From contig NC_092355.1 in the NCBI RefSeq assembly GCF_963676685.1, forward strand, positions 24,986,001 to 25,050,000: a stretch of 64,000 nucleotides of DNA, read 5' to 3'. Both the position numbers and the translations under genes were made by a program. This document shows, piece after piece, positions 6,232 through 17,265 of the stretch. Origin of the DNA: Mytilus edulis. Taxonomy: Eukaryota. The stretch's first letter is position 1. Every line of letters starts with the position of its first letter. Below the pieces are notes generated by a model. It saw only the letters and a program-made list of their open reading frames with translations, was not told the origin of the DNA and did not search any database.

Positions 6232-8308
6232 CAACTTGACGTCCATAAATAAACACATATATTAAGAAAAAACCAATTTCAATTGTGCTATTTTTTTATT
6301 TATTTTTTTATCATTGTAGATTCTGCTCATTATAATGAAAAAGTAACAGTTATTATCACACGTTCATTATAAAGTACTAGTTACTAAATATCACCTTGAT
6401 CATTATAATGAGCAAGCAACTATGAATATCCTACAATCAATGTCATCGGTTTTTTTTTCTGTTTTCTGTTCACTCTAAAGGATCTAAAAAAGAGAGACAA
6501 ATAGTTATACACATTTCCCCTATCTATTTACGGAGAATTTCTGATATTCAAATATATTATGAATATAAATGTCTTATTCACGACTGTCATATCGGAAGAG
6601 AGAATATTTATCTATGTGTAGATTATGAAAGACACGTGTATGTTTGTCTCTTTTGAACTGTTTCACTTTCAAATAGAAATTACAGAGCATGTGTTCATAT
6701 TCTGCATACACTCATGTGGTTATACCAAGTGCTACTTACCGTTTAGTATTTTTTACAAATTGTTGAAGGTGTTTATCATTCCCATAAAACCCGATGACCC
6801 AACTTATAGGCTTAAAAAATATCGCAAGCCTAATTCTTACTCTAGTTGTGTTAGTCTATGATGAGACGAATTATGCTTGTTAAGTGATTTACTCAATGTA
6901 TAATCTTTTTGATATACTTGTAACTACTCAAGGAGGTTTCATTCAAACGTACATGAAACCAAAGGAAGACACTAAGAAAAAGGGGTAAAAATCATTTCAC
7001 TGTATAACTTGTTTAACACCAACCCATTGTCGGGCTTTTGAATTGCTTCTCTGGGTATTTGGCATGGTTTTTTTTTATGGATTTGCCTTTATTGATATTT
7101 TTAGAATTTCAATGTAAACATATTTTAACTCTTTAGGTTCAAAACCAAATGCATGTCATGCCTTTAAATACAGTAATGCATATAAATTTAGTATGGTTGA
7201 GTAAGTTTTGTTAAGGCAACTGAATATACGGACCAACAACATATTTTCCTTCTTTTAGTCGAAATATCACACACCCGTCGATTTTTACTGCACGGGTAAA
7301 ATTAAGACCCATTTCATTTTTTGTAAATAGAGTAACGATGATAAACATGTTAATTACTTTAACAATCACTCAATTCGATTTGTTAAAACTTTAAATGTTA
7401 TAATTCCGAGAGAAAAAAACGTCAACTTTATTGTACTCACTGAACAATCTTAATGGAATATTTCCAAAAAATTGAGTAAAAAAGCGAAACTTTTCAGTTA
7501 TCTGTTAAATGGGTTAGCTGGGATATTTTACTTGTGTACTTAAAACTATCGCAGAGACAATCTTGATAAGTTAGTACGTCTCAGTAAGTAATAAGTTCTT
7601 ATCATGAAATGTGTATTTTTGATATAATGCAAATAATATATGAATTAAACGCGATATAAGGTATACATCTATGAGACGGCAAATTAAAGAAACTAAACAA
7701 AAAGACATCAACATATCAACATAATGTTATCGACAACAGGCATGGATTAACGAATTATACATGTTATACATGTGATATCAAACATACAAAATATTTACCG
7801 ATGAACATAAGCATCTGATGCAGTACAATTGGTGCCAATAATGTTATCAAAGAATAAATAAATTTTCTCAACGATTGTAAATGAATATTTTTGTACATGT
7901 TATCTTGTTTATATATCATTTTGTATCGGCTTATTTTTACCATGACAATTGGGAAGTATTTAACATTTTTAATCGATTGTTCGCTCGATTGTTGTTGATA
8001 AATCTCTACAGACATATATCAAAGTTTCCAATGCAAAATAAATTTAGGAAGAAATGCAAAACATAAAGACATTTTTCCATCAAGTATTATACTTCTTCGG
8101 ATGGTTGTCGTTTTTTTTTAATTTACATCGGAGTTGTTTTTACATTTTTTATACATTGTATTTGAAAAAACCCCAAGAAACATGTAATCATATTTCTTTC
8201 TCTCTATCAAATGGTAATGGAAACATTGATCCATTGGTTTAAGCTTAACATTCAAAGGAAAATATCTCATGCATATTCATGATGACGACAATAATAAATT
8301 AATACTTA

Positions 8309-8395
8309 CTAGCATGTACCAGATTTGAGAGTGATATCATCAATAGCAATGTCACCCTGCCAAGCCTCAGTTATTGCAGACGCTTCTATGGTGAT
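8309..8395 (-). CDS. MAM domain exon 4 (ITIEASAITEAWQGDIAIDDITLKSGTC-stop)
   Basis: GTTGCAG acceptor, GDIAIDDI motif, terminal Cys then TAG. The G of TAG also starts a GTAAGT, so a further spliced exon cannot be excluded. Confidence 0.85.
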   Translation of the reverse strand: MTIEASAITEAWQGDIAIDDITLKSGTC

Positions 8396-11300
8396 CTGCA
8401 ACATAACATATGTGTTATTGGTATTGAAATACATTGGCACTAATATTTTTCACTTTCGTGTTTTAAATAAAAACGTTTTTAGATGTATTGTGAATTGTAA
8501 ATATTTTTTCTTTACATTGAGAAAATAAACCATAATATTTATTTGATTTTCTGTATGGCTGTAATTCATACTTGATCTGGATAAATTTTTGTTTTTGTTT
8601 TAAAGAATAAACAATATATACCAATATCTATTACTGAATTTGAGATTTCATGTAACAAGAATGAGTAAACGCAGTGAACATTTTTAGTGGTATCACGAAG
8701 ATTGAAACATATCATTGAAACATTTCTTAATATATCGATCAGAAGTCTCTTGATGGATACACAATAGTTACCACTTTATAACTAAATTGTGCTTTATCAA
8801 GTTACACAATACTTACCACTTTATAACTAAATTGTGCTTTATCAAGTTGCACAATACTTACCACTTTATAACTAAATTGTGCTTTATCAAGTTACACAAT
8901 ACGTACCACTTTATAACTTAATAGTGCTTTATCAAGTTACACAATACTTACAAGATAATAACTAAAGAGTGGTATGTCAAGTTACACAATACTTACAAGA
9001 TAATAACTAAATAGTGGTATGTCAAGTTACACAATACTTACAGGATGATAACTAAAGAGTGGTATATCAAGTTACACAATACTTGCAATATGGTTAATGA
9101 ATTGTTGAAAGTCTATCATCGCAGTTTCTTTAGTCACGTTAGTAAAAGAATACTTACAACATTAATATAACGAACAGATAAAAGGAAACTATTATGAATG
9201 TTCGAAATAGTTCCGTGACGGTGTGTCACTTCAATTTGGCATTCATGTTTGTGATATTTATCCATGTCATTTGGACTGCTTGATATTTGTCTCATTATAA
9301 ATCATATATAGATACCACTTTTCCGCATTTCCACATAATGGGTGCTTTTTACATTTTGACGTCAGCATGAAGTGCCTTGATAGCAATTTCTGCTAAGGGA
9401 TGTACTTAGGTGAGGGTTTGTGGAGTTTAAAAAATCAAGAATTTAAAATTGATACCTTAATAGTTGTCAAAGGTACCAGGATTATAATTTAGTAAGCCAG
9501 ACGCGCGTTTCGTCTGCATAAGACTCATCAGTGACGCTCATATCAAAATATTTATAAAGACAAACAAGTACAAAGTTGAAGAGCATTGAGGATCCAAAAT
9601 TTCAAACAATTGTGCCGAATAGCGTTTGTTAAGGAACAAAACAAGCTTAAAATATCGATAGGTCATGGAGCTCCTTTTCGAGATAACTGGTTTTTTTTTT
9701 AAATGGCGGTAAAAAGCTAACTTGGACTTTTATCTTATATTACATTGGTATTAATTGGGTCTCAAATCAATAGAAGAAAATCTAAAATCTGCTTCAACTT
9801 AAGCAAATGACCCTTTATGACCTTTTAAGTCTTATATATAAAGATAACTGGGTGTGAAAGGGTAAAATATTTTACATTGTATTGTATGAAAAAAAAAAAA
9901 CATGGAGTCTGAACATTTGACACAATTTCTAAAACCTCACATAAGTACATCCTTAACTCTTATTTTTCATACATTGTTTATAAATGAGTCGTAGTATACA
10001 TACACCAAGATTACTATATTGTGGGATATTTATGGTAGCAGTTTTCCAAGAGTCAGGATTAGGTTGCTCTCCTGTTTTTTCCCATATGCTACTCAAAGAA
10101 GATGTTTTATCTCCTGCAAATACTTCCAAAGCATCTATATGTTGTCCTTTCATATGGTACTGGAAGGACAGACACCAAGGACAGGCTGGAAAAAATCAGT
10201 TAATGATCAATATACTGAAACGACATCAATGAGACATGAAATTGAGGTGTGAAGAATGCAATATTATTCACGTACCTATTTTGTTTGCTCATTCTTTCAT
10301 CTTAAAGATAATTTCTCATCGGAAGATAGTTTTAAAGTGGCATTAGCTACGAGTTCGATTTGAAATTACATATATGTGGTGTTCTTTTTTTCAGACATTT
10401 ACCATGTTTATTGAAGCGGAGTAATTATGTTGTATTATAATATTGACGTCTGACGTAACTGACGTATTATTGAAAATCAAACTGCAGAAGTTTTTTTTAT
10501 TAGAATACGAAGTCTATAAAAGGACCAATGCAACCAACTAATTCAATACTAGTAACATAGAATATGTTTGTTAAATCATGTCAGTACCGAAGTTTATCAT
10601 GCGTTTATTGTTTTCTGTTGGGTATTACATTGATAATTAAGAACGTTTCGTTATTCTGGTGATCCGTTTATTTGACAATCGAAATGGCAGTCAGCAGGGT
10701 TTAAGAACATCCGTTGTTCGACCTGCGAGCTGTCAAATGCGTTTTGGTAAAATATACTTTTCCACTTTTCTGGTCTTTTTCAAAATGTTGTCTGTGCTGT
10801 ATTGAGACCCCACTGCCACTTTTTTTACATGCACACGTATAAAAATTGTGGTTTTTATCCAACGAAATTATAAGTTTGAACGTTTTAAATACTTATAAAT
10901 TCATTCACAGAAAAACAGAAAACAGCGATTTAATATTGTTAAACAAAATACCAACCTAAAAAATGTTAAACAATTTGTGTTAAACCATTCAAATATAAAA
11001 TTTACAGACACATAAACTATAACGTTGCGTAATCACTGGTATTAAACTGATAACCGTAACTGGAATTACGACTATCCCAATATGGCGACGGCAGATATAT
11101 GTAAAATCTTTACAGTCATTTTTCTCAAATGTAGCATGTTTTTGTCATTAGTTACTCAGCTGCAAGGTTTTTCTATACCAGTACATCATACTTGAATCGT
11201 AAAGGTGCACTGGAATTGTCTAAACGCTTTGAAAATTGCTGTTAAAAAATTCGGGATGATAATCGTAACTCAATGGCATTTTTTTGTTTCATAATCGTAA

Positions 11301-14300
11301 TTTCTTTACAAGATAATAGTAACTGAAAAATAATAAATGTGTCTTTCAGCATTTCAATGGTATTTTGTGTATTAAAATGCAAATGTCTAGTTAAACGATG
11401 ACATAACGCAAAATAAAAATAAATGTAGAAACTTACAGGTTAATTCTAGGACAAATTTACTTATATATCTCCATTTGTAACTGACAACACTATGCCAAAC
11501 CGTTTAAAAGAGGGACGAAAGATACCAAAGGGACAGTAAAACACATAAATCGAAAATAAACCGACAACGCCTGGCTAAAAATGAAAAAAACCAAACAGAC
11601 AAACATATAATTAATATATACATGTACCTGTTAAAGATATGGAAATGAAGCAGCTGTCGAGTAAGTTATTGTGGTAAGTAGATATTTTAATTTCTTCCAA
11701 AGTTTCAAAGTTGTGTGCGCGTTTAAAGGTTCTTTCGGTTTGTTTTGTTGTTTTGTTGTTTTGTTTTTGTTTTTTTGGTGGGGGGGAGGGGGGAAGTTGG
11801 GATTAGCAATATCCCATATCCCAAAAGTGCAATCCTTTTAATTCATTGTTTAAAATGAAAGTCCCGTATACCACATTTTAATATGCCATATGTTTTGCCT
11901 CTAATATGATGTTTATACTAATATTCTGTGCGAAATGAACAAATGTTTCCAACAATAACTTTATAATTGCATTATCGGATTTAACAGTTGATACTTTTAT
12001 CGGTGGATATGAATGTTTATATTGCCCTTTTCCTAATATTTCAATAAAAGTGCATATAGTTTAATTTTGGAGTGAACTGATAATTCCGGTTAAAATAGTC
12101 GTTCATATTTTTTCCCGTGGATTTAACTTTTTTCTGTTTTATACTGATATAATATATGATTTTAAAATCTTAATTCAAATGTTTTGATCAAATACCCATG
12201 TATGTAAGGACGTTTCGTTAAACAGTGTGGATGGTAAAGGATCTAGAATAGTTTATTGTTACTATTAAAATTTAAATTTATAACTGCCTCTCCGCTTATT
12301 CCCATATTATGTGACATTCCTAGTTCTTGGAAATTTCTGTATTTAAACATAGTTCGTGTTTTCCCCATTCCAAAATTTCCTGAAGCTTGCGGTTCACCCT
12401 TCCAATTTTATGATATACTTGTACGTAGCTGTTTTTATTAGAACTATTAATAATATACATGATATATGTACAAAAAGAAATGTCATAAGATGTTTGGACG
12501 TTTTAGTGATTAATTCATCACCATAATTTCTTACCCACAGTTAAAACACGAACGACTATTTGTAAAGAAGATACTTTTGTTCTTGGGTATCAATTTATGA
12601 TGTTTGACATCAATTTCTTTTATAAAATCATTGAGTATATATCATGTCTATTTAAATGAGTATCAACTTTGTAAACCAGTAACCTCAATATCTTTTACTC
12701 CACTCTTACTGACTATAACCTGTTTGAACGGGACTGAATGATGTCCAATACTAACTTATAGAATAGAAATACTAGGTTAATAAGCGGGCGGTAGTGCAGG
12801 ATAAAATGGATATATAATTTGTGTTATCAACTCTAATATATTGAATCTACAATCTTGTGAGCAACTCTTATTGGTTTTATCAAAAAGCCTTTTGAATCCT
12901 TGGTCGCTTTTTGCATGATGTATAGGTATTATTGGTATTATTGGTAACTGATATACAATTTTATGAGATCTTTTCTCTCTAACCAACACATTAACTTCGG
13001 CATATTTTTGTATTAACAAATAATCCATAAATCGAAACTCATTTAAATAAAAAAAAAATATTCACAAATCACCACAAAGAAGAGGCAACCATGTGAATCA
13101 GAAACATTCTTCTAAAGTCCGGTGATAACATTCATACTTTCAGGTAGTCTGTTATTTCGCGAACAGTAAAAGTAAAATGAACAAAATAACTGCGGAAACA
13201 CAATAACCAGTTATTATGAAAGTCATACCTTGTAAGTTTGTGGCTTCTGTAGTGAGTACAGCCTTTTCTTGAAATCCAATACCGCTTGCCTCTATGAACA
13301 TGTACCATGACCCCTCGGCTGCTGAATTAGGACCAGTGTCAGGCGTAGGGGTAGAATTCTAAAGCGACAACAGTTAAAACATAAAAAACAATAATATTAA
13401 TATTCATTTCTATCCACGTTTATGTACAAAAACATGTTGAAGGTGAACCTTATAAACTTATAAACTACCAAGCCTTGTAAGAGAGGGACGAAAGATACCA
13501 GAGGGACGAAAGATACCAGAGGGGCGAAAGATACCAGGATTAAAACTTTGTCAACTAGATTGATCAATACCGCCCGAACTATAAAATTTATAAAAGTACG
13601 ACGTTGCAGGGCATCGACGACCAATTTTTACAAAAGGGTTTTCCATATACAATTAAGGAATAAAATTGAAAATGAAAATCTATTTCAGAGGTTTAAACCC
13701 CTTGTTTTTGAAAATTCAAAACCATGAGCATATCAATTAACTAATTCACACAACTTACGTGTAAAACAATGTACATGTCTCAATCAATAGACCATGACTA
13801 ATGAAATTATGTCATATCAGGTTTTCGATACGAAATGTGCAAAGACTTATACAACTGTATACCCAATAAAAGGTATAAAACCACTAATTCAGGCCCAGTC
13901 GGAAAGAACATACAAGAATGTAATACATATTCTAAACAATATATGTCCTACACATAGCTGTATCACTGTCAATAGGTTAAATATTTAAATAGTTTTTTGG
14001 TATCAAATGAAAGCTTGGGGACTACGGATTACTGTAGAACCCTTGTTGAAAGTTTCTTATGATTATTAAACAAGTATATAAAACTATAATAAAAAGAAAC
14101 ATTGCCCTGTTGTTCAGATAACAAGTACCTGTTTTGTACTATCAAACATAAGGGAACCAGTACACTCTAGTATGCAATTAACGGTATGTTGAATTTTTCC
14201 TCACAAGTCAGGATAAGGTATAGTTTTGAATTGAAATTACTGCCACTTTATTTGAACTTCAGACAAAGTTGCCATTAATGCTTGAAATTGGTTTTATACC

Positions 14301-17105
14301 ATAATTGAGTAACCGCAGCACGTTTTTCTTATTGTAACAGTTGCTAACTATGTCGCAATGACCTTAACCTATGGCCATGTTAACTCAGGATCGATTGTGG
14401 TCTATGTTTGTAATTACATCTCGTAAGCTCACAGGTTATGTCTATTCTCAGTCAAGTAAAGTCAACCTCTTGCTTAATAGTAACTAATATTATTGAAATC
14501 TTTTATTCTAGATTTGTATGTTCAAACCAGATTCGGTAAAGTGCAACCACTTTTATCGTCATTGAATATGAGTATCCATTTCCAACAGAGTATCCAATTT
14601 TCTCTCCATTTACTCGTTTTTTTTTTAATCAATTAAAGTTCTGATAGTTGCGTTTTACATAGGTAAACAATCAACCAATCAACCAACCAAAATGAGTTTG
14701 GTAACGGCAAAGACAAAATATTGCCATATCTAAATTTCGTTGTTGCCGTTTTGTGCTGTTGAAAAAGCGTAAACCAACAAACAACTAAGCAAACAATTTA
14801 GATTTTGGGGGGTAGGCATCTAGTTTTTGCATCATTGTACAACCTCCAATTATTTTTTTCTAACGCTTATTTGAGTTGTTAAAGATAGTAACATACTAAT
14901 CAAATTGTTTTTTTTATTCGAAAGCGTTACCAGTTAGTTTTGAACTTGTGTGTCTAAATATCCATTTGCTATCTCCTTTTCTTTTTAAAACTAAACATCA
15001 TGTAGAAATGGTCGGGAATTGTACGACTTTCTGTTAAAAGTAAACTTGTTTTTGTTAAAGAACTTACAGCTTTCCGAGTCCAATCAAAATCATCCTGACT
15101 AGATTGTTTGAAAAAACATTGTTCAGTTGTCTCAAATCCACAGTTGTGCTTTATTTCTGGTATAACTGTAAATAATATTAAATCGTATTATGTTTAAGTC
15201 GATGGAATCATATATTAATATGATCAATCAGTAATAACTGTACATCTAATTCAGGGGTGTCTTTTGTCTATTTTGATTTAAATTTTACTACAACATACGT
15301 ACAATGTAGCATGTCGAAAAATATAATAAAAACTGTTTGTGTTCATATTTGTTGCTTTTAATTTTGCATCTGTCCCAACCAATAAGAATATACAACATGT
15401 ACAAATTGAAATGATTATCTGTCGATGGTTCTGTGATTCAGGAATCATTTTTGCTAAATTTATTCTACTACTACTATATTTGTCGACTTAATTAGCAGTT
15501 AACGTTACAGTCAAAACAAATAAAATAGCAGTATGAAGACATCATTAAGAACAAGGTCGCCCTACAAACAATCTACCTTAATTGTTTGGTCTTCAACGGG
15601 AAAAGTTCAAATCGGATAAAGTTTGTATAAATATGTTGATTTTAGATTTAATATGACGTTGTTGTTGCATGCACTAGTCGCCACTTTCTTTGAAGTCGAG
15701 TACCAACTATGTATGAAAGAGGAATAAAACACTTTTCTATGAATTGTTTCAAAAACAACTTTTACAGTTCAATATTATTTGCAACGTGGTAGCATGGTAT
15801 TTTATTCAAACTTGCCTTTGGATTCCTCCTCTCCGCAACATGGCTTTTCGTTGCAGCATCTGCCCTTATTAATCCATCCTTGTCCAAACTTTTGTTCACA
15901 CGTAAGACCTTTTGTTCCACATTTACCTTTAGAAGCCAGACATTGTCCAGTGAGTACTAAAGAGAACAGTACATCGATACAATATGATATCATTCGCTCT
16001 TGTTTATTCAGTGATGATGTATTACATGTTTTAATACTAAAGATATAAGTTCATAAAATGATAACAATTTCATTATTGAAAAAGTGCTAAATATTACCGT
16101 CAAATTGCTCAAAATTTATTTCGGCAGTTATTCTAGCAAATAGATAGAGATATACCTTCCAAGCTCTAGTATAACTTATTATCAGATCAAACATGGTATT
16201 TCACAGAATTTTGAGGGAAACATGGAAAAAATACATCTAAAAAAGAAGATGTGGTATGATTCACAATCATATTTATAATATTACCTACGTAAAATATAGG
16301 ACATAAATAAAAATGTGATATTTTTTAGAAAAGTGTGGATTTTTAATGTGTTATGATATTGTGGTATTTATAGTTTCTTGAAAACAACACCTCTCATTTT
16401 AATCTCCGCTGCCGGGGTTAAAAGCTGAAATCAGAATGTAAGTATCTACTTTCGTTTTCTTCAATTACTACTGTAACACGACACCTTACTTACACGTAAC
16501 TTATGAGTTAAGAGTACCCTTGCCAATTTGTTCGAATTGTTCACTATGTGCATACATATTCCTCTAAGCAGGGTTTTGTTTTTGGTGAAATGTATTGAAT
16601 TGAACATTAAATGTAAATTGTTTAAAATTTACTTGCAAAATCTTATTTATCAATGTCAGCATCCCCAAAAAGGAGATATTGATAACTTTACAACGCTCAT
16701 ACGCATTTCTCTAGTGAGGCTTTTGAACATCAACATTTTTCGACCTGAGTTTTTATTCCTCTTTAAATGTCTCCCAAACTCTTGTGTTCACAAATGTTGT
16801 AAACAAATTATCGGTTGAAAGCAGTCTTGTACGCTAATACTATTTTGATTTAACTTTGTTTATCTTGGCAAACCAAGTTCAAAGTTATCTTGCACTTGGA
16901 CCTTGTTTTGACCCTCGCTCCAAATCTCAGCACTATACACGCCAAAACATAAGTTTTTGGTAGTCATAAAAGCAATTCTAAAAAATCGTTTTTGATCAAA
17001 TAGCGAACAAGCTATACTACATGTAGTTATGACAAACTTACTGCCGCCATGAGTCACATAAATTGTGCAGAGGATGATTACAATCCAGCAACAAAACTTC
17101 ATCAT
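8309..17105 (-). CDS. Secreted protein: signal peptide + Cys-rich defensin-like module + MAM domain, 233 aa; join(complement 17042-17105, 15816-15956, 15068-15165, 13229-13358, 10004-10185, 8309-8395)
   Basis: Six exons splice in frame (64+141+98+130+182+87=702 nt, intron phases 1,1,0,1,0) with AG acceptors and GT donors (one GC). MAM hallmarks: CGFE..C..DDFDWTR, TPTPDTGP, GSWYMFIEAS, CLSFQYHMKG, W..A.I, GDIAIDDITL..GTC. Confidence 0.9.
8758..9090 (-). repeat. 45-bp minisatellite (~7 copies) in the last intron of the MAM gene
   Basis: CAAG anchor at 8798, 8843, 8888, 8933, 8978, 9023, 9068. Confidence 0.95.
9398..9952. mobile_element. Non-autonomous TIR element (MITE, Kolobok-like TTAA context) with a nested hammerhead-bearing repeat
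   Basis: Left GGATGTACTTAGGTGAGGGTTT versus right AAAACCTCACATAAGTACATCC|TTAA. Confidence 0.65.
9496..9537 (-). ncRNA. Minimal type I hammerhead ribozyme motif (Penelope-like terminal repeat)
   Basis: Minus strand GTCA-CTGATGA-GTC-ttatgca-GAC-GAAA-CGCGCG-TC-TGGC: intact core, stem II, palindromic stem III, stem I. Confidence 0.8.
10004..10185 (-). CDS. MAM domain exon 3 (ACPWCLSFQYHMKGQHIDALEV...WKTATINIPQYSNLG)
   Basis: TTTTTTCCAG acceptor, GTATGT donor, CLSFxYHMxG motif; overlaps supplied ORF 9953..10153. Confidence 0.9.
13229..13358 (-). CDS. MAM domain exon 2 (NSTPTPDTGPNSAAEGSWYMFIEASGIGFQEKAVLTTEATNLQ)
   Basis: CTTTAG acceptor, AG|GTATGA donor, TP..TGP and YMFIEAS motifs. Confidence 0.9.
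15068..15165 (-). CDS. MAM domain exon 1 (VIPEIKHNCGFETTEQCFFKQSSQDDFDWTRKA)
   Basis: TTTACAG acceptor, GTAAGT donor, canonical MAM N-terminal motif. Confidence 0.9.
15816..15956 (-). CDS. Exon encoding defensin-like module C-x6-C-x6-C-x13-CC-x4-CC
   Basis: CTCTTTAG acceptor; ILTGQCLASKGKCGTKGLTCEQKFGQGWINKGRCCNEKPCCGEEESK; AAG|GCAAGT donor; symmetric phase 1-1. Confidence 0.85.
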
Positions 17106-17109
17106 AATT
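17042..17109 (-). CDS. Signal-peptide exon (MMKFCCWIVIILCTIYVTHGG)
   Basis: TTTCAG acceptor, ATG at 17105, hydrophobic core, A|GTAAGT donor (phase 1). Confidence 0.85.
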
Positions 17110-17265
17110 CTGAAATGAATATTCTTCTAATATTAAGTCTATATTCCGGATTATTGAGAAAGTGCTAATTACCAGAAGCAAGCGCAATGCACTTGTATTA
17201 CTTAACGATCAATTTTGATTGCTATTTCAAGCTCGAAAAAAACTAAAACTAAAGTCCAAACTTAC

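Follow-up and report, generated by a model that had tools for sequence, protein, structure and literature searches.

A gene on the minus strand of a 64,000-nucleotide stretch of Mytilus edulis DNA (contig NC_092355.1, positions 24,986,001 to 25,050,000; hereafter the window, with positions counted from its first letter) appears to encode a secreted protein in which a small cationic, cysteine-rich module precedes a single MAM domain. The explanation that fits the whole best, and which we hold to be somewhat more probable than all others together, is an intact secreted gene of a Mytilus cassette family in which a defensin-fold head is joined to binding domains that it would multimerise. The signal exon and the module exon form a two-exon leader cassette, and the comparison of gene and protein sequences gives good support to the spread of this cassette by repeated exon shuffling or exchange of the cassette, with the window gene as one product. 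On the matches retrieved, the family is restricted to Mytilus and comprises at least about 100 genes.

The window consists of AT-rich animal DNA (about 31% GC). On its minus strand, to which all gene coordinates below refer, six coding exons join into a 702-nucleotide open reading frame (ORF) of 233 codons with one terminal stop, and every boundary was checked. The exons are entered in phases 0, 1, 1, 0, 1 and 0; introns 1, 3, 4 and 5 are of the GT-AG type and intron 2 has a GC donor. Exon 1 (17042–17105) contains the ATG and a signal peptide of 21 amino acids, and ends in phase 1 at the donor GTAAGT. Exon 2 (15816–15956; 141 nucleotides, phase 1-1) encodes the cationic module, which has 40 amino acids and seven cysteines, followed by an acidic tail, GEEESK. 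The single MAM domain then begins in exon 3 (15068–15165), which encodes a linker and the first two MAM cysteines, and continues through exon 4 (13229–13358; its second quarter), exon 5 (10004–10185; the core with a CPWC motif) and exon 6 (8309–8395), which carries the end of the domain, its last cysteine and the TAG stop at 8311–8309. A first candidate polyadenylation hexamer, identified by pattern match, is located 189 nucleotides 3′ of the stop (8117–8122).

The joined protein was used to count length, stops and cysteines, and homology searches were made with single exons or with full-length database homologs. Because the exons align colinearly with the M. edulis RefSeq paralog P0031 (exon-wise identities of 87, 72, 53, 69 and 67%), the gene model is not a product of chance. 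The original prediction had described a spliced ORF of 233 codons with a signal peptide, a seven-cysteine exon of phase 1-1 and one MAM domain, and it holds in every point; judged from its sequence, the window gene is intact and real-looking. An acceptor-like ttcag was observed 4 nucleotides 5′ of the ATG (17106–17112), and the signal exon with an acceptor-like ttcag or tacag at the same distance is kept in 12 other loci of both MAM and lectin types. Since this site recurs in the window and in these 12 loci, a further untranslated exon, belonging to the 5′ untranslated region, probably lies upstream of the signal exon.

Searching the M. edulis genome with the 46-amino-acid exon product yielded 116 six-frame matches, 103 of them with an expectation value (E) ≤1e-3 and only 4 with internal stops, which lie on 11 large and 2 small contigs. 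All 20 loci that were inspected have the same exon frame, consisting of an acceptor ttag/ (the slash marks the splice boundary), two bases, 40 codons and a phase-1 donor. The usual donor of the module exon is AAA T/GTAAG, and among these loci the GC donor with the acidic extension occurs only in six MAM copies on chromosome 12. A homologous signal exon lies upstream of the module exon in 13 of the 20. The domain encoded 3′ of the module exon, surveyed in 20 genomic loci of 10 kb each, was MAM in 10 cases, lectin in 8, Sushi-lectin in 1 and unrecognisable in 1. In a phmmer search of 1.84 billion representative proteins, 25 matches were obtained at E ≤0.001, and all credible ones came from five Mytilus species. 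The matches outside Mytilus (P0005, P0008, P0016, P0017 and P0025) covered short stretches only and were rejected as spurious; those looked up were an archaeal TPR protein (P0005), a stick-insect protein (P0008) and a metagenome protein (P0016).

The database proteins share a near-identical signal peptide and the module, followed by MAM, a C-type lectin domain (Lectin_C), Sushi plus lectin, Sushi alone or a fibrinogen-related domain (Fibrinogen_C). The first 64 residues of the lectin-type protein P0042 are 86% identical to those of the fibrinogen-type protein P0049 and 67–77% identical to those of MAM-type proteins; over the cassette of 64 amino acids, lectin, fibrinogen-type and MAM proteins were also found to agree at 74–89% of positions. 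Furthermore, a maximum-likelihood tree of 36 modules, which is based on only 40 columns, requires 9 partner changes where the minimum possible is 4; it contains three well-supported groups with mixed partners, and one identical module was found with both lectin and fibrinogen-type partners. It is the presence of the same cassette in front of MAM, lectin, Sushi-lectin and fibrinogen-type domains, together with the 9 partner changes, that argues for exon shuffling. The proposal that shuffling had joined a peptide to a MAM scaffold was therefore borne out in a broader form than originally made. The same architecture as in the window was recovered as well, in MAM-type RefSeq proteins of four Mytilus species and as the module-MAM exon order at 10 genomic loci.

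A number of copies depart from this pattern. In the older automatic models P0004, P0007, P0011 and P0012 the module stands in the middle of the protein or near its C-terminal end, after a transposase-like region, a fibrinogen C-terminal piece or a Sushi-lectin part, or between partial MAM segments; these are probably chimeras of neighbouring genes. At the locus L020/L035 (C11:24234891) the first cysteine is replaced by serine and no recognisable partner domain was found within 8 kb downstream, and this may be a decayed copy or one with an unknown partner. Other copies lie on the contig of the window. About 28 kb before the start of the window (L003/L022, 24958288–24958425) there is a paralog in convergent orientation, with a signal exon, a module exon (89% identical), a GC donor and MAM exons as in the window gene, and more module copies are found at 25.81, 64.11, 65.45 and 65.55 Mb of this contig.

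The module was examined for its sequence characteristics and predicted fold. Its cysteines form the array C-x6-C-x6-C-x13-CC-x4-CC, which is a spacing of 6, 6, 13, 0, 4, 0. Counted at 47 amino acids, the module has an isoelectric point of 8.55, with 8 Lys and Arg and 5 Asp and Glu residues, and its 40-amino-acid core has a net charge of +5. These features are common to the family. Of 35 unique modules, 30 keep the spacing and 34 the seven cysteines, whatever the partner domain; almost every member has a cationic module, and the median net charge is +4. AlphaFold2 with a 39-row alignment returned a best model with a mean predicted local distance difference test score (pLDDT) of 84.3, in which a helix at residues 3–7 is followed by a two-residue bridge (11–12), a turn or helix (19–23) and strands at 27–32 and 38–42.

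When this model was submitted to Foldseek, the top matches were almost all beta-defensins, at non-significant E of 0.45 upward and with query-normalised template modelling scores of 0.52–0.59. Structural alignment of the same model against 48,161 representative chains gave Z ≥2 in 24 cases, and 23 of these were defensin-fold peptides, including beta- and alpha-defensins, crotamine, the platypus defensin-like peptide, sea-anemone toxins and one centipede toxin. The top chain was hBD-2 (Z 4.5, root-mean-square deviation 1.9 Å over 37 residues), and in a second look at Foldseek's matches hBD-1 reached Z 4.7 (1.7 Å over 35 of 36 residues). The structural search proposed with the original prediction thus returned almost only defensin folds, although only one of the five models behind it was confident. 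We consider it reasonably probable, at a level modestly above even, that the module takes a beta-defensin-type fold.

Several observations weigh against this fold and, more generally, against the interpretation given above. The module has no detectable sequence similarity to Pfam defensin families or to PDB chains: no Pfam family was matched at E ≤10 by the module in 21 members, and a profile made from a module-only alignment (A2) matched no PDB sequence at E ≤10. This profile replaced a search with alignment A1, which was uninformative as lectin columns of full-length rows dominated it. A search of the ESM Atlas with the module gave no usable match. The other four of the five AlphaFold models of the module were unconfident (pLDDT 47–55), and the full-length prediction of paralog P0031 (alignment A3), with a mean pLDDT of 59.6, stayed below 50 in the module and in the first half of MAM. 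Fold-match scores were low in absolute terms (Foldseek E ≥0.45, Z <5), which is expected for 40 residues. A homodimer prediction of the module gave no verdict and was used neither for nor against binding. The C2-C3 loop has 6 residues, compared with 3–4 in defensins. In the window's own small C12 cluster the ratio of nonsynonymous to synonymous change (pN/pS) is 0.93, a value that comes from very few changes. Some of the partner assignments come from older automatic models which may be chimeric (P0049, P0007 and P0012); RefSeq models exist for every partner type. Finally, depth over exons 1–3 was zero in two small sequencing runs that were guessed to be RNA, which is not evidence of silence; these runs had seemed to hold 6–8% of the stretch because the shared words came from intronic repeats.

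The most serious competitor is a module that is a lineage-specific, disulfide-rich stalk or oligomerisation domain unrelated to defensins, its likeness to them being convergent or arising because the predictor favours a common small fold. Such a domain would account for the missing homology to defensin families and PDB chains, for a single confident model in five and a full-length model without a confident module, and for a C2-C3 spacing of 6 rather than 3–4 with a seventh invariant cysteine. The module is moreover internal and unreleased; no dibasic site follows it in the window product or in the family proteins inspected, and when the A2 profile was run over proteins of 25–80 amino acids for stand-alone short precursors, only three ORF fragments from genomic contigs were found. 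Its position N-terminal to lectin-type domains resembles that of the cysteine-rich heads of collectins and ficolins. Purifying selection on the module is in keeping with a stalk as well. With a pooled pN/pS of 0.25 for the lectin cluster and of 0.50 for the C7 MAM cluster, we regard the module as constrained and not as a hypervariable effector. However, a stalk unrelated to defensins does not readily explain why the search of 48,161 chains gave almost only defensin-fold peptides, why nearly all family modules are cationic, or why the intron 5′ of the cysteine domain is in phase 1, as it is in big and beta-defensins (PMC7203481). Weighing both sides, we give this alternative an appreciable chance, clearly smaller than that of the defensin-type fold.

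Comparison with known defensins leads to a similarly divided picture. The C-terminal domain of beta- and big defensins has the array C-x6-C-x3/4-C-x9/13-C-x4/6-CC, and in trans-defensins the disulfides connect C1-C5, C2-C4 and C3-C6. Like hBD-1, hBD-2, AvBD3 and Cg-BigDef1, the module has about 40 amino acids, is cationic and shows the outer spacings x6, x13 and x4; it is also predicted to form an N-terminal helix and a three-stranded sheet (Z 4.5–4.7, 1.7–1.9 Å). A phase-1 intron 5′ of the cysteine domain is a hallmark common to big and beta-defensins (PMC7203481), and exon 2 is likewise entered in phase 1, four codons before C1, in the window and at all 20 loci checked, so that the module resembles these peptides in having such an intron just 5′ of its cysteine-rich part (PMC7203481). 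In contrast, it has seven cysteines rather than six, with the CC doubled at C4; it lies on an internal symmetric exon and not on the last exon; it is not freed, a domain of 165 amino acids following it; and it is without the hydrophobic N-terminal domain of big defensins.

The head lacks two features of defensins, sequence similarity and the form of a free peptide encoded by a terminal exon. The original designation of the module as defensin-like stands as far as the predicted fold, the outer spacing of the cysteine array, the charge and the phase-1 5′ intron are concerned, but not as regards sequence homology, which is undetectable, and it is qualified by the single confident model of five. 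On the strength of the model the head probably folds like a beta-defensin. Shared descent with big or beta-defensins, by comparison, seems rather doubtful to us, given the missing sequence similarity, the longer C2-C3 loop and the additional seventh cysteine.

The second alternative concerns the junction of exons 2 and 3 in the window copy. Here the sole frame-keeping donor is a GC-type 5′ splice site, GCAAGT preceded by AAAG (15810–15815, minus strand). With the next GT (15811), the only one nearby, translation would leave the frame and run into a stop in exon 3. Read-through of the GC donor meets an in-frame TAA (15804–15802) that is overlapped by an AATAAA (15801–15806, minus strand), as read directly from the sequence. 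Just after GCAAGT (15808–15815) the window copy is 2 nucleotides shorter than the paralogs L002–L006, and this shortfall both removes a weak alternative GT donor and creates the in-frame TAA and AATAAA; the five paralogs keep the 2 nucleotides and have no in-frame stop. In the family, the RefSeq models P0031 and P0034 (M. edulis) and P0030 (M. galloprovincialis) use the homologous junction ACAG/GCAAGT, and at the loci L023 and L024 the RefSeq proteins can be obtained only by splicing at this donor. The locus L002/L021 was confirmed in the genome as a MAM-type paralog with the GC donor. The older automatic models P0001, P0032 and P0033 instead use a weak GT 7 nucleotides further on, an alternative that is absent in frame from the window copy because of the 2-nucleotide difference.

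These features could mean that the window copy is not expressed as a MAM fusion, either because the GC donor is skipped and the AATAAA in intron 2 terminates the transcripts, so that a free peptide of about 52 amino acids results, or because the copy is a silent recent duplicate. The stop met after four codons of read-through, the loss of 2 nucleotides that five paralogs have kept, the lack of RNA support for the window copy and a pN/pS near 1 in the C12 cluster all agree with such a scenario. However, the six exons are open, the splice sites are good and the MAM part is free of defects. AAAG/GCAAGT fits the strong consensus typical of GC donors, and RefSeq uses the donor in paralogs. As the paralogs do not keep the in-frame stop, a regulated switch is no feature of the family, and the search of the protein collection gave no stand-alone short precursor. 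We consider this alternative improbable. Since the stop is absent from five paralogs, a conserved switch in the family is unlikely; a MAM-less short form of the window copy itself would be possible. That exons 1–2 (a peptide gene) and exons 3–6 (a separate MAM gene) were joined by artefact has only a very slight chance, for although RNA evidence for the window copy is lacking and the donor is non-canonical, exon 3 has neither a signal peptide nor a start codon of its own for the MAM part, independent RefSeq models from four Mytilus species have the same architecture of 228–234 amino acids, and the same exon order recurs at ten genomic loci.

The fusion of the head with a MAM domain is thus the reading that we retain for the window gene. 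Exon 5 alone matched the Pfam MAM family PF00629 with E 2.2e-8 and 34.6 bits, compared with a cut-off (gathering score) of 26.4, and matches to the PF00629 profile are colinear in exon 3 (1–24), exon 5 (74–125) and exon 6 (133–157); exon 4, which alone has no Pfam match, is colinear with full-length homologs. The full-length homolog P0003 matched PF00629 over positions 1–158 with 103 bits. All four conserved MAM cysteines, a pair close to the N-terminus, one within C-L-x-F-x-Y and a terminal one, are present in the window product (77, 85, 149 and 233 of 233), and the MAM part has five in total, the extra one being Cys 146 in the motif ACPWC. RefSeq models with the MAM architecture are P0031 and P0034 from M. 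edulis, P0030 from M. galloprovincialis, P0003 from M. trossulus and P0036 from M. californianus. These five paralogs or orthologs share the junction of the window model and have 228–234 amino acids, with the exception of P0034, which has 214 and is without the MAM end.

With meprin, RPTP-mu and MDGA1/2, the window product shares one canonical MAM domain with its four conserved cysteines. MDGA1/2 consist of six Ig domains, FN3, MAM and a glycosylphosphatidylinositol (GPI) anchor signal. From the window product, in contrast, Ig and FN3 domains are absent, as are a protease or phosphatase part and a hydrophobic GPI signal at the C-terminus; the product ends at the last MAM cysteine, and the paralogs end 3–4 residues after it. 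Pfam recognised MAM alone in the paralogs of 228–234 amino acids. Because they are without Ig, FN3 and GPI signal, the RefSeq name 'MAM domain-containing GPI anchor protein 1/2-like' is misleading for these paralogs.

The odd number of cysteines in the module and the extra cysteine in MAM had originally been taken to suggest a disulfide between the two domains. As a general feature this could not be upheld, given that the seven module cysteines are kept with every partner and the extra MAM cysteine is absent from P0030 (ASPYC) and P0036 (ASSWC). Fibrinogen-type and Sushi-type members have no spare partner cysteine, and an odd total was counted for 12 of the 18 mature family proteins; the total of the window protein is even (12). 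Because the extra MAM cysteine is not universal and 12 of 18 totals are odd, an obligatory inter-domain bond is not a feature of the family. An inter-chain bond or a free thiol would fit the family better, although the window protein, its total being even, could do either.

These results can be combined into a working model of how the proteins may act. The C-terminal domain, whether MAM, lectin, Sushi plus lectin or fibrinogen-related, would bind a target, and the defensin-fold head would hold six of its cysteines in three internal bonds and leave the conserved seventh free. Through this cysteine, covalent dimers or oligomers might form and give multivalency to binders that have a single binding domain; the cationic surface of the head may additionally contact microbial or host membranes. 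We infer this mechanism of target binding and head-driven cross-linking from the family as a whole. A multimerising role of the seventh cysteine is a tentative proposal with a chance approaching even, and direct antimicrobial activity of the module appears unlikely. An immune or mucosal role, as originally suggested for the window protein, may be envisaged. More speculative again, and rather unlikely in our estimate, is a genus-specific universal head whose unpaired cysteine links MAM, lectin, Sushi-lectin and fibrinogen-type subunits into homo- or hetero-oligomers, or which arms each of them with a membrane-active defensin.

Several known systems bear resemblance to parts of this architecture. 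Collectins and ficolins are likewise secreted, and in them a C-type lectin or fibrinogen-like domain follows a short, cysteine-bearing N-terminal head; the unpaired cysteines of the Mytilus proteins are candidates for inter-chain bonds as in these proteins. Unlike them, the Mytilus proteins have no collagen-like stalk and their head is predicted to be a folded disulfide-rich domain of 40 amino acids, for which multimerisation is proposed on inference only. Defensin-type modules also serve as building blocks of larger proteins in lepidopteran X-Tox, where each defensin motif is located on its own exon (PMC4558851), and in avian AvBD11, which was among the structural matches of the module model. 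X-Tox and AvBD11, however, repeat defensin modules, whereas the Mytilus head is a single module combined with unrelated binding domains. Mytilus CRP-I is a Mytilus-restricted cysteine-rich family with a conserved leader (PMC4558851), and it shares these three characteristics with the module family. Membership in CRP-I was ruled out by its array C-C-CC-C-C, its dibasic pro-region and the position of its cysteine part on the last exon. In the full-text literature available to us, which covers journals in part and includes two surveys of bivalve C-type lectins and a big-defensin review, each searched by keyword, neither the head nor fusions of defensins with lectin or MAM domains were described, and the head family is apparently undescribed.

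The introns of the window gene contain repetitive elements. A 45-bp tandem repeat (7.3 copies, 92% matches) lies in the last intron at 8758–9084 and is the cause of a repetitive ORF at 8787–8921, and an 18-bp tandem repeat is found at 13482–13537. In all four sequencing runs the stretches 11499–11697, 13290–13687 and 16076–16274, listed as intronic, had very high summed contig depth (up to about 1.5e5 at 11.5 kb) and contained many contig ends and joins. These stretches are high-copy interspersed repeats.

In mussels, lectin-like recognition proteins and cysteine-rich defence peptides both form very large and variable repertoires, and they are usually studied as separate classes. In the family described here, more than 100 genes combine a defensin-shaped module on its own symmetric exon with recognition domains of at least four kinds, and surveys based on Pfam domains are blind to the module because no Pfam family matches. 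We therefore view the window protein family, with moderate confidence as far as the fold is concerned, as secreted lectin-like and MAM proteins with a defensin-fold head that had not been named before. If both the fold and the free cysteine are real, they would explain the multivalency of single-domain mussel lectins, set right RefSeq names that mislead, such as 'MDGA-like' and 'perlucin-like', and provide a concrete case for the exon-shuffling route that has been proposed for the evolution of defensins (PMC7203481). Should the head indeed prove to be universal in the sense given above, mussels would possess a combinatorial repertoire of recognition plus effector functions, and the family would offer a living example of how exon shuffling moves a trans-defensin exon.

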